Assembly: GCA_965240325.2 (NCBI GenBank)
Contig: OZ251223.1
Coordinates: forward strand, 4,340,001 to 4,404,000
DNA: 64,000 nt
Reading direction: 5' to 3'
Source: Rebecca billardiae RCC1528
Taxonomy: Eukaryota > Protista > Haptophyta
Part shown: one piece after another, positions 56,037 through 61,990 of the stretch
Numbering within the stretch: the first letter of the stretch is position 1
Layout: each line of letters starts with the position of its first letter
Made by a program: the position numbers and the translations under genes
Notes under the pieces: model-generated
Databases searched by the model: none
Seen by the model: the letters and a program-made list of their open reading frames with translations, nothing else
What the model was told of the DNA's origin: nothing

Positions 56037-56046
56037 GTGTGGCGTT

Positions 56047-57978
56047 TACCAGGTCGTTCCCCCTGCACTGGGAATCCGCGGTTTCGCACTATTCAGAGCA
56101 CGAGGCCGCGGCATAGCAACGCAGATTTATTCTTCCGCTTGCTCTATCAGACCACTTGAACGATCTAATCGAGGTTTCCAATTGAAAATGACGAAAGTAC
56201 ATCCATCCATTAGAGAACCCAAATCCCGAGCGCGGCAAAGCCGTGGAACGCAGTAATCAGCCTCGTCAGCGATAGTCCGCTCACGAAATCGAGGCGCTGG
56301 AAATGAGTTCTTCGCGTGCAACCGCGGAGGCGGGAGCCCTCCCGCGGGTGCGGAGCACCGATTCTGACCCGCCCCCTGCGCCTGCGGCCGGGCGGCGAGT
56401 GCGATGCAGCTGGCCCGGCGCTGGGGGGCGCGGATGTGCTTGCGGAGCCGGCGTGCGTGGACGGGCTGTTGCGGGAGAGTATCTGCCGCCCTCCTGCGCC
56501 GCGCGACTTGCGCCACGCCTCTTTCGCCTCGGCTCAGGGCAGCGCGCACGCGCGCGCCGCCTCCGGGGCCAGCCTTCGGCCTGCGCCGCAGCCGACCGCG
56601 CGCGCGCCGTGCGCGGCGTGGTCGGGAAGGAACGGGCGCGGCTGCCGGGCGAGATGGCGATATCATGTGCGCACGCCATGCCGCCCCGCCACGCCTTGCC
56701 GAGCGTGTCGCTGGTCCATTTGCACGCCTCTTCGAGTTGTCACAAATGGTGTGCACGCGGCCTCGCGGTCGGTGACCGCTGGGGGCCGCGCCCGGGCCAG
56801 GGCGCTGCGGGCGCGGATGTGCTTGCGGAGCCGGCGTGCGTGGACGGGCTGTTGTGGGAGAGTATCTGCCGCCCTCCTGCACCGCGCGACTTGCGCCACG
56901 CCTCTTTCGCCTCGGCTCAGGGCAGCGCGCACGCGGCGCGTCGCCTCAAGGCCAGCCTTGCCTGCGCCGCAGCCGACCGCGTGCGCGCCGTGCGCGGCGT
57001 GGTCGGGAAGGAACGGGCACGGCTGCCGGGCGAGATGGCGATATCATGTGCGCACGCCATGCCGCCCCGCCACGCCTTGCCGAGCGTGTCGCTGGTCCGT
57101 TTGCACGCCTCTTCGAGTTGTCACACTATGAATGGTGTGCCACGGCCTCGCGGTCGTGACCCTTGCCGGGACGATCATTGAGACACAGAACAGTGCCAAG
57201 CGGGCACGCGGGATACTCTTACATGAATGTTCATCACCACGTGGTCGTGTAGAAGTGCTGGGTGCGACGCTTTCCTCGCGCGGATGCACTTTCATCATCT
57301 TCTTCGAGCTCCGAGGTCTGGCTTCAGGCACGACAAGAAATCAGCACTCGTCAACAGCTGTGCGGATCCGTTATCGTGCCCTTTCGCGGCGCCGCGGGGC
57401 GGCATGGCGTGCGCACATGATGTCGTCATCTCGCCCGGCAGCACCCCCCGTTCCTTCCCGACCACGCCGCGCACGGCGCGCGCGCGGTTGCGGCTGCGGC
57501 GCGGGCACGGTGCGGCCCTGGCCTCCGAGGCGGCGCGCGCGTGCGCGCTGCCCTGAGCCGCGGCGAAAAGAGGCGTGGCGCGAGACGCGCGGCGCAGGAG
57601 GGCGCCATATACTCTCCCGCAACAGCCTGTCCACGCAAGCCGGCTCCGCGAGCACATCCGCGCCCGCAGCGCCGTGCCCCGGGCGCGCCGGCCGCCAACG
57701 GCGCTCGGCCGCCTTCGCCTGCCCGCCCTGCCGCCGAGGGCAAAGGTCAAGATTTGGTCGGCCCTCGCCTGCCGAGCCGCCACCGGCCGGGGGCTCCCTG
57801 CACCATCTATCTCATTGCGGCTCAATTTTGGGATTGCGAGACCAGCTCATCGATTGACGCACATCCGCACCCGCGAGACCTGAAAATCTTATTCGCGGGT
57901 AGCGACGGGTGCGTCCTGCGGCTGTTTTTCTCGTATGTCCAAACCGCGGATTCCCAGTGCAGGGGGAACGACCTGGTA
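56047..57978. mobile_element. Nested 1.93-kb TIR element with internal tandem and inverted repeats
   Basis: 38-bp perfect TIR (56047-56084 and 57941-57978); splits gtggcgtt|atagggaacc; ~360-bp unit at ~56418-56777 and ~56800-57160, inverted at ~57395-57672. Confidence 0.92.
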
Positions 57979-59476: not shown

Positions 59477-60945
59477 CTAGCGGCCGGCGCGCGCGCGCAG
59501 GCAGGGCGAGAGGCGCTGGCGCGGCGCGAGCCGGCGCGTGCGCGCGAGCGGGCGCACCTGCTTGAGGTACTCGCCCTGCGCCATGCGCTCGACGACGGGC
59601 CGCTGGTCGCTCGTGCCGGCAGAGCGAGAGCGCGCGCCACTGCTGGCCCCGGCCTGCCGGCTGCGCAGCCTCGCACCGAGACCGACCGAGCGGAGCTCGG
59701 GGCGGTGGAACGAGGCGAGCGGCGCGTCGCGCCTGCCGCCGCGCGTGCGCGCCTGCTCCACCGCGCCGCCGTGCTCGCCCGCCGCCTCCTCCGCCGCGTC
59801 GGCCTCGAAGACGGCGGCTGCCAGCGGCAGGCTGAGCCGCGCGCCGGCTCACTCACACTGTGAGTCACACCCGCGGTCGCCTCGACAGCCAACTATCCAC
59901 AGCTGCTCGAGCTGCTGGAGGGCGCCGCGACGATGGCGGCGCGGGCGCCCAGCGCGTCCGTTGCCGCGTCGCTCAGCTCGTCGAGCTCGGCGCCGCACTT
60001 CGCCAGCTTGGCGCCTAGCGCCTCCGCGTGTCACGTGCTCGTGCACGTCAGCCTGCTGATACGCCGCCGCCCATCGGCACTTCTGGCATCTGCGCGCGCA
60101 GCTGCTGCAGCTCGACGGCGGAGTCGTCGCGGCTGGCGGCGAGGGTGCGCACCGCGTCGATTGCCGAGGCCTGCAGCCCGGTGATCGCCGCGTCGACGCG
60201 CGCGGCGATTTCCCCACGCAGCCTCCTCGCGCCACGTGGCCGCCGCTCGCGTGGCAGGCAGCTGGGCGCCGCTGCGCGACCCGGAACCGGCGCGCGTTTC
60301 ACTGATGCTCCTGCTCGTCCTCACGCTGCTGCACCTCCGCGCCGCCGTCGACCGAGTTGAGGAGGAGCTCGCGCTCGGCGTCGAGGCGCGAGCTCGCGTG
60401 CTCGAGCTCGCCCTTCAGCCGCGCGAGCTCCGGGCGCATTCGGCTCATCAGCTCTGCCGCGCTGCCCGCTCGCTCGCAGCGGCGCGCTCTGCTCCGGGCC
60501 GCCGTCGACTGAGTTGAGGAGGAGCTCGGGCTCGGCGTCGAGGCGCGAGCTCGCGTGCTCGAGCTCGCCCTTCAGCCGCGCGAGCTCCGGGCGCATCCGG
60601 CTCATCAGCTCTGCCGCGCCGCTCGCTCGGCGGCGGCGGGCGGCGCGCTCTGCTCCGGTCGGCGAGCGACGAGCTCGCGTGCTCCGGACTCGGCTCGCCC
60701 TTGCGCGCTGCTCCTCGAGTGACGAACGCGCCCGCGGGCAGGTTGTTGCCCGTCGCCCCCGCCGCGATCTCGCCGCCCCCGCCGCGATCTCGTCGCGCAT
60801 GTGTCCGTGGCGCGCGCCTGCGAGGTGACACTACTGACAGGCGGGCCGCGAGCTGGCAGCCTCGGGGAGAGCGGAGCGAGGAGAGGGCGAGACGCGCGGC
60901 CTGCGAGGCGACAGGCGCGCTCGGGGAGAGCATTTTACCATTCAC
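59477..60945 (-). pseudogene. Decayed coiled-coil ORF inside the DIRS-like element (possible gag/ORF1 relic or captured gene)
   Basis: LMSRMRPELARLKGELEHASSRLDAE (tandemly duplicated) and EIAARVDAAITGLQASAIDAVRTL; several stops and frameshifts. Confidence 0.45.
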
Positions 60946-61990
60946 ATTTACAAGTGATCAAGTTTCCCGTGCGCCTGCGAGGCGACAGGCGCGCTCGGGG
61001 AGAGCATTTTACCATTCACATTTACAAGTGATCAAGTTTCCCGAGCCCTTGCCTTGCCGTTTTTATCGGTTGGCGGTTGGTGGCAATCTCATACTTAAAA
61101 TCGCGCTCGTAACGAACCGTTACGTTAATGTCACGTCCAGCTGACGTCCAGATCGCACTTTACTTAAGGGAATGAGCTGGACGCGCTTATTTTCGGCCTA
61201 ATAGACCTCTCTATGCGATCTCAAAAACTCGAAACTCGGTCTCCGCCAGCCCTAAAAATCGCCCCCCGTCCCTTTTTTCTTGATCAAAGATCTTTTTGAA
61301 ACGTGGTTCGGGCCCGCTGGTGCGGGCTCCACGCTGCGCGCTCCGCCCTGCACCGCGGGCCAAGAGACGAGGACTGCGCGGCCGCGCGCGCACGATCGAT
61401 CGCGACGCGCGGCGAGCAGACACGCGTCAGAGTGCGCCGCACCCGCGCGACGCACGGGCGCGAGGCGAGCGCGTATCTCAAACGATGAAGCGTGCGGGTT
61501 GACGCGACAGCGGCGAGAGCAAGAGACCATTGCATGAGGGGCGACGCGGCGAAGACAGATGATGACGTCGCGCCGCCGAACGATCAGGCGGGGAGCCGGG
61601 CCACACAGACAGCCAGCGACCTTACCGAGCAGAGGGGCTGCGGCGACTGCGGTGCACCTCCTGCAGCGGAGCGTGCACCCGGCAGTGCCCGACGCAGGCG
61701 ATTCCCTTGCCCAGCTCGGCGCCTTTGTCGTGAGCAGCCCCATGGCGCCCCCGAGAGTGAAGCCTGACTCGCGGGCGCCCTCTCGACCTCGGGCAGCAGC
61801 TCAACCGCCACGCCGCTGCCAGCGCCCGCTGTCGTTCGTTGCTCAAATCCCAACATAGCTAACCTGATCGTTCCATGATTGATCATTGTGGTCTGTCTAC
61901 TCCACGACGCCGCGCGCCGCGACCATCCAGCTCCAGAGTCCATTCGTACCCGACGCCTTGTACGAGCCGGGCATGGCGGAGTGGCTAGAC

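Follow-up and report, generated by a model that had tools for sequence, protein, structure and literature searches.

What kind of mobile element occupies positions 56039-61990 of the 64,000-nt stretch that we analysed from Rebecca billardiae RCC1528 (contig OZ251223.1; hereafter the window, whose positions are used throughout)? An earlier note on this DNA had proposed a DIRS1-type family with a naturally very long internal complementary region (ICR). The locus does hold a real mobile DNA element, devoid of proteins and embedded in a TA repeat. In our view it is a recent retroelement of the tyrosine-recombinase type that codes for no protein, most likely a rearranged split-direct-repeat (SDR) copy with two transposons nested in it.

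Layout of the element

The order of the parts was established by comparing the window with itself. Two repeats, A and B, an interior X of 176 bp and a short spacer make up the host element, which measures ~1.94 kb once the nested elements N1 and N2 are subtracted; these two transposons, unrelated, account for two thirds of the total length. Along the plus strand one meets (TA)n, a reversed B (its last 8 nt, then N1, then the remainder), the spacer, B, A, the interior, B1-289, A reversed and (TA)n again:

55959-56038, no strand: (TA)n target tract of the left flank, ending in one GT unit
56039-56046, minus strand: last 8 nt of the terminal B, element 3' end ...AACGCCAC
56047-57978, no strand: N1, a 1,932-bp nested element that splits the terminal hairpin of B
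57979-58442, minus strand: terminal B (B4-460), with a private 7-bp insertion
58443-58531, plus strand: 89-bp spacer, a weak paralog of the B-proximal end of X, read as the last 89 bp of the parent's interior Y
58532-58999, plus strand: internal full B, 468 bp, starting with CAA as at the X-to-B join and ending in a hairpin with an 8-bp stem plus GCCAC
58940-59030, no strand: end-to-start junction AC|GT with a predicted single-stranded DNA (ssDNA) fold, break at 58999/59000
59000-59224, plus strand: internal A, 225 bp, identical to the terminal A
59225-59284, plus strand: left part of interior X, 60 bp, with a TTTATAAG box 4 nt past A
59285-61362, minus strand: N2, a 2,078-bp Helitron2/Helentron-like nested element
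61363-61478, plus strand: right part of interior X, 116 bp
61479-61767, plus strand: partial B (B1-289), 289 bp with 1 SNP, the apparent left inverted terminal repeat (ITR)
61766-61990, minus strand: terminal A, element 5' end GTCTAG..., overlapping B289 by 2 nt
61991-62120, no strand: (TA)n target tract of the right flank, with one AC unit
15922-16149, plus strand: ends-only copy (A1-202 plus B443-468), 228 bp, between TA runs

Repeat copies are 98-100% identical across the element. A at 59000-59224 is the reverse complement of 61766-61990 over 225 bp with 0 differences; among the copies of B, one has a single SNP and another, the terminal one (56039-56046 and 57979-58442, minus strand), has the 7-bp insertion and lacks the first 3 nt. 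At 58999/59000 the end of B meets the start of A (GCCAC|GTCTAG), and the two halves of this junction are the two outer termini, joined exactly. Both termini (GTCTAG... and ...GCCAC) were confirmed by the 228-bp copy at 15922-16149, and in both copies the flanks read T|GTCTAG and GCCAC|A. (TA)n adjoins both outer ends of the element, with one GT/AC unit within the first 4 nt of each flank. No target-site duplication (TSD) is visible, and a duplication of TA would be invisible inside (TA)n. Most of this had been anticipated by the earlier note: its 225-bp block A is exact, its inverted partial B of ~290 bp is the 289-bp segment at 61479-61767, its inverted B joined to A (~690 bp) comes to 693 bp and its ~89-bp spacer to 89 bp. 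The near-identity of the copies and the match between the internal junction and the outer termini, each at a TA run, were borne out as well. A recent, non-autonomous, TA-embedded element with the internal end-to-start junction typical of tyrosine-recombinase retroelements fits these data.

Inside X, 4 nt beyond the end of A (59229-59236), is a TATA-like box, TTTATAAG, which on the minus strand reads TATAAA. Repeats of the ATC/GAT type (CATCAT, GATGAT) border TA runs at 55940-55958, 8669-8700, 16162-16180, 42038-42090 and 63929-63950; from these borders, the targets may be compound microsatellites.

As had also been noted, no reverse transcriptase (RT) or tyrosine recombinase (YR) is present, either in the element or among the best 25 of 40 Pfam families for 54 long open reading frames (ORFs) of the window. 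The interior ORFs had no match in Pfam, exact look-ups found neither ten ORFs of the element nor one host gene on record, and the junction and A-start patterns gave 0 matches in metagenome contigs. The hairpin pattern had two matches in viral contigs, with unrelated flanks. A retrozyme or Penelope-like reading found no support, Rfam returning only chance matches to TA runs and no ribozyme; a Replitron was set aside because short direct terminal repeats were not seen, and integrase-type TG...CA ends were rejected because the junction is without the extra A and T.

Nested elements and a simple unit in independent runs

Evidence from two independent runs, X1 and X2, was drawn from Logan contigs, which are simplified and may have lost rare links. 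The earlier note had recognised the terminal B and left its interruption unmentioned: 8 bp from its end, this B is split by N1, a non-coding element of 1,932 bp with perfect 39-bp terminal inverted repeats (TIRs) and no TSD (TT|AT). The interior of N1 holds direct repeats (~365 bp, 94%) and inverted repeats (~300 bp, 87-89%). In X1 the left end of N1 is joined to a different flank, and its right end is linked to B. A 21-bp match at 23666-23686 resembles the N1 TIR.

What had been taken for a ~2.2-kb decayed interior is mostly something else. One contig of X1 omits exactly 2,078 bp, revealing the empty site, and X2 holds both N2 ends with other flanks, so that 2,078 of the 2,254 bp of interior belong to a separate element, N2, leaving a true interior of 176 bp. 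Read on the minus strand, N2 begins with T and carries a 5' hairpin holding an asymmetric inverted repeat; towards the 3' end lie the partner of this repeat and a further hairpin, and the insertion site is T|T, without TSD. All of these are features described for Helitron2 (PMC3627910), and none of the Helitron2/Helentron features for which we tested is missing from N2, although its 3' partner repeat lies ~45 nt from the end, farther than the usual 20-30. Its minus strand also contains frameshifted coiled-coil-like coding fragments and tandem duplications of 157 bp and 74 bp, and diverged copies are many in X1 (depth up to 170 near 61220-61419). Homologue searches with two coiled-coil-like remnants of N2 gave no match. 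We dropped these remnants as a clue to the sense strand of the host element because they belong to N2. As the interior is no degraded coding region of the host element, it gives no indication either of which way transcription runs.

A simple form of the host element was found in X1, the best of the independent runs, as one unbranched A-X-B contig of 861 bp. In simulated graphs (k=31), a simple unit with N1 yields exactly 861 bp, and the layout of the window yields breaks at unit positions 225, 402/405 and 690. The 861-bp contig wholly accounts for the depth of X1 over 61620-61819 (5.84 predicted, 5.85 seen). Being unbranched, it fits a simple SIRE-like A-X-B unit and not the layout of the window. 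X1 departs from the window at several sites, and on this sequence comparison is probably another strain or haplotype.

Such a unit could also be thought of as a rolling-circle element, in which case the 869-bp A-X-B would be a non-autonomous Helitron2/Helentron (or other HUH) element forming seamless head-to-tail tandems, and the window copy a tandem rearranged without any reverse transcription. Like Helitron2 and Helentrons, the host element has asymmetric inverted repeats, a 3' hairpin and no visible TSD (PMC3627910): an interrupted inverted repeat sits at the 5' tip (at 0-2 nt in such elements), and its partner, 29 nt before the 3' end and thus within the usual 20-30, is followed by the hairpin. 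The junction is seamless, the simple unit is dominant in X1, and a Helitron2-like element, N2, is present in the genome. Yet the host element starts with G and not T, the tip of A is without a 5' hairpin and the site is T|A rather than T|T, whereas N2 shows every one of these features by the same tests; a diverged second interior end would also be left unexplained. We know of no role for an inverted internal junction in Helitrons, and consider this origin improbable.

The layout itself could be an artefact of assembly or of fold-back reads among repeats bounded by TA runs. Some data point that way: the B'-spacer-B segment is a long hairpin, the whole arrangement is contained in no single read or contig, and every run examined lacks the link between A and B289 at 61766. 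But N1 and the 7-bp insertion set the two arms of the hairpin apart, a SNP is private to the partial B, the spacer resembles X and is not known as a sequencing adapter, and two of the links recur in other data, namely N1 to B in X1 and the B|A junction, which is bridged by a contig of X2, an independent study, over 58898-59044. An artefact is, on this evidence, very unlikely.

Proposed rearrangement of a split-direct-repeat parent

We give an even chance to the reading that we prefer, in which the host element is a non-autonomous SDR tyrosine-recombinase retroelement (PAT/TOC1/VIPER-like) of the form A1-Y-B1-A2-X-B2, rearranged by two template switches. In the parent, A would have 225 bp, B 468 bp and X 176 bp. 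It would be copied by the RT of a partner and integrated in trans by the partner's recombinase, entering (TA)n through the AC|GT junction without target duplication. In DIRS-1 the RT, and probably the other proteins as well, work in trans (PMC7192593). The first switch would take B4 to the final 89 bp of Y and the second B289 to A225, with a 2-nt overlap; the inverted piece may have been donated by the same copy or by another. Together they would have removed most of Y, inverted the normal internal B|A junction (hence the look of an ICR) and duplicated B4-289 (286 bp; hence the look of ITRs). N1 and N2 did insert into the present copy, as the data show, and the 869-bp A-X-B unit and the 228-bp copy would be SIRE-like or solo derivatives.

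Three lines of evidence argue for an SDR parent. First, 58443-61767 is colinear on the plus strand, running in one direction throughout from the spacer (the putative end of Y) to B, A, X and B1-289; the same CAA precedes B after X and after the spacer, and is missing at the join between spacer and terminal B. Second, the B-proximal end of X and the spacer can be aligned (55 of 101 columns), only in the predicted orientation (p of 0.0005-0.005 against block shuffles and of 0.013-0.032 against GC-matched natural sequence), while its reverse complement scores at chance level. A first test by local alignment against the interior was negative, and the global alignment is not significant against unmatched natural sequence. 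These comparisons are weak evidence that the spacer may be a diverged paralog of the end of X, i.e. the end of a second interior, Y. Third, the A-X-B contig of X1 is unbranched.

Several observations weigh against such a parent. An intact A1-Y-B1-A2-X-B2 copy of the family was not seen, the X1 graph has no Y branch, microhomology at the breakpoints is just 0-2 nt, and the homology between spacer and X is weak. No RT- or YR-encoding partner was found, and no genome-wide search was made. A contig of X2 ends exactly at A225 with a depth of 3.9, which could be chance and yet suggests that this boundary is shared beyond the present copy. In addition, rare links can be pruned when Logan contigs are simplified, and reads may be suppressed by the 463-bp hairpin. 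Replication can stall at long TA tracts (PMC12972899), which would make template switches plausible here.

Elsewhere in the window, a second repeat of ~170 bp followed by a TA run is found at 62155-62355 and 8468-8668, 98% identical between loci, and its end at 62121-62180 has a 34-bp duplication including 8 nt of TA. At 25579-30383 (minus strand) lies a non-coding long terminal repeat (LTR) element with two identical ~845-bp LTRs (TG...TA), a 5-bp target duplication (TTTCA), a G-run ahead of the second LTR and an interior of tandem repeats. An ORF at 365-3118 combines SPX and an MFS transporter; its best matches are only 52-54% identical, so the organism is thinly covered in protein databases.

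Possible integration at the junction and comparison with known systems

How could an element enter (TA)n through a junction that shares no core with its target? As ssDNA, the 91-nt junction is predicted to fold into an outer stem (the tip of A with subterminal B), a largely unpaired spacer of 5x5 nt and an 8-bp hairpin, with z-scores of -4.2 and -4.6 for the two strands. The outer arms strengthen this fold beyond chance, being equalled by 0 and 4 of 1,000 arm shuffles and by 5 of 631 natural controls, and in the predicted fold the AC|GT break falls at the edge of the unpaired spacer. Integron attC sites, invoked here as a mechanistic analogy only, are likewise folded single strands with two stems around an unpaired central spacer, and their single strand exchange is resolved by replication (PMC3458562), as may be the case for the host element. 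They differ in that the organism here is a GC-rich eukaryote, in which no integron integrase is known.

The analogy suggests that the junction could be integrated into (TA)n as a single strand. Were transcription to proceed from A towards B, first-strand cDNA would correspond to the antisense strand; the cDNA of DIRS-1 is for the most part single-stranded (PMC7192593). Cleavage by tyrosine recombinases yields a 3' phosphotyrosine with a free 5' OH (PMC3458562); a cut TAGAC|GTGGC on the antisense strand would fit this polarity, and a G-T wobble could allow pairing between a TA target and the first two bases exchanged. With lower confidence, then, the folded single-stranded junction would be recombined in the manner of attC with one strand exchange, which would explain integration without a shared core. 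The fold would suit an HUH enzyme as well. The specificity of the DIRS recombinase had not yet been tested as of PMC7192593, and our literature search returned no paper linking DIRS with attC-type recombination.

PAT-like and DIRS1-like elements are sister groups that differ mainly in their terminal repeats (PMC3266345, PMC6681497), and in the literature that we read we found no account of one layout turning into the other. Under the SDR reading, two template switches suffice to turn an element with direct repeats into one with all the structural parts of DIRS1. The boldest version of this idea, which we regard as doubtful, is that the inverted layout has been copied to several loci, so that an SDR element would have been caught converting by two template switches into a working ITR/ICR (DIRS1-type) element, integrating into (TA)n without a shared core through a folded, attC-like junction of single-stranded cDNA. 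A junction that has no trinucleotide in common with its target, together with an attC-like fold, makes single-strand integration testable. Should only this locus have the layout, we are dealing with a single scrambled transposon copy of modest interest.

The resemblance to DIRS1 raises another possibility, that of a propagating non-autonomous DIRS1-type family with A as left extension, B4-289 as ITRs and B290-468 as right extension, in which the 693-bp inverted junction would act as a splint, restoring the ends and circularising the cDNA. As in DIRS1, an internal block is complementary to both termini, with the left-end half first (A' and then B'), the order required of a splint (PMC3266345, PMC7192593); inverted repeats lie near both ends, no TSD is visible, and the tips are partly complementary, recalling the divergent ITR of DIRS1 with its terminal extension of ~29 bp on the right that holds a hairpin. 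The internal A is identical to the terminal one, and the stop of the X2 contig at A225 would be in keeping with a family-wide boundary.

The measurements are, however, hard to reconcile with DIRS1. In 28 published DIRS1-like elements the ICR spans 85-149 bp (Table 3 of PMC3266345), the left extension is at most 64 bp, and the ICR halves overlap on a 3-bp junction, mostly NTT, that is also found at both ends (PMC3266345). Here the complementary block has 693 bp and holds a whole third copy of the ITR, the left extension is ~225 bp, and the boundary between ICR and ITR shares 2 nt instead of at least 10. The AC|GT junction has zero overlap, no trinucleotide is common to it and both ends, and the ends are GT...AC, not NTT. 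B4-289 is inverted near both ends but lies 225 and 179 bp inside the termini, and only the first ~30 nt of A pair, in part, with subterminal B, similarity between A and the reverse complement of B not being significant over the full length. Gag, RT/RNase H (RH), MT and YR are all lacking, no run contains the link between A and B289, and X1 gives an unbranched contig. Judged by sequence, the host element resembles DIRS1 in the order of its parts and fails its defining features. The DIRS1 architecture seen in the earlier note therefore stands for that order and falls on ICR length, on the 3-bp overlap and on the third ITR copy; its DIRS1-type family with a naturally long ICR was not demonstrated, given also a spacer that resembles the end of X and the simple unit of X1. 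We rate such a family as unlikely, though a genuine contender.

The SDR reading is the one that we compare last, with PAT-like/TOC, Ngaro and VIPER/TATE elements and with SIRE of Trypanosoma cruzi. Unlike in these, where the order is all direct, the present copy has an inverted B1-A2 block and a duplicated part of B; the host element has no ORFs, it targets (TA)n at T|A, and its junction reads AC|GT. Like them, it has A and B repeats within 200-470 bp (PMC6681497, PMC8969392), those of VIPER measuring 173 and 219 and those of TATE 381 and 294 (PMC6681497), an internal B|A junction at which the end of one long repeat exactly meets the start of the other, a short stretch of unique sequence separating A from B, and no visible TSD. 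SIRE corresponds to the A2-spacer-B2 part of VIPER (PMC6681497), and the 861-bp contig of X1 and the 228-bp copy resemble it as short A-spacer-B derivatives.

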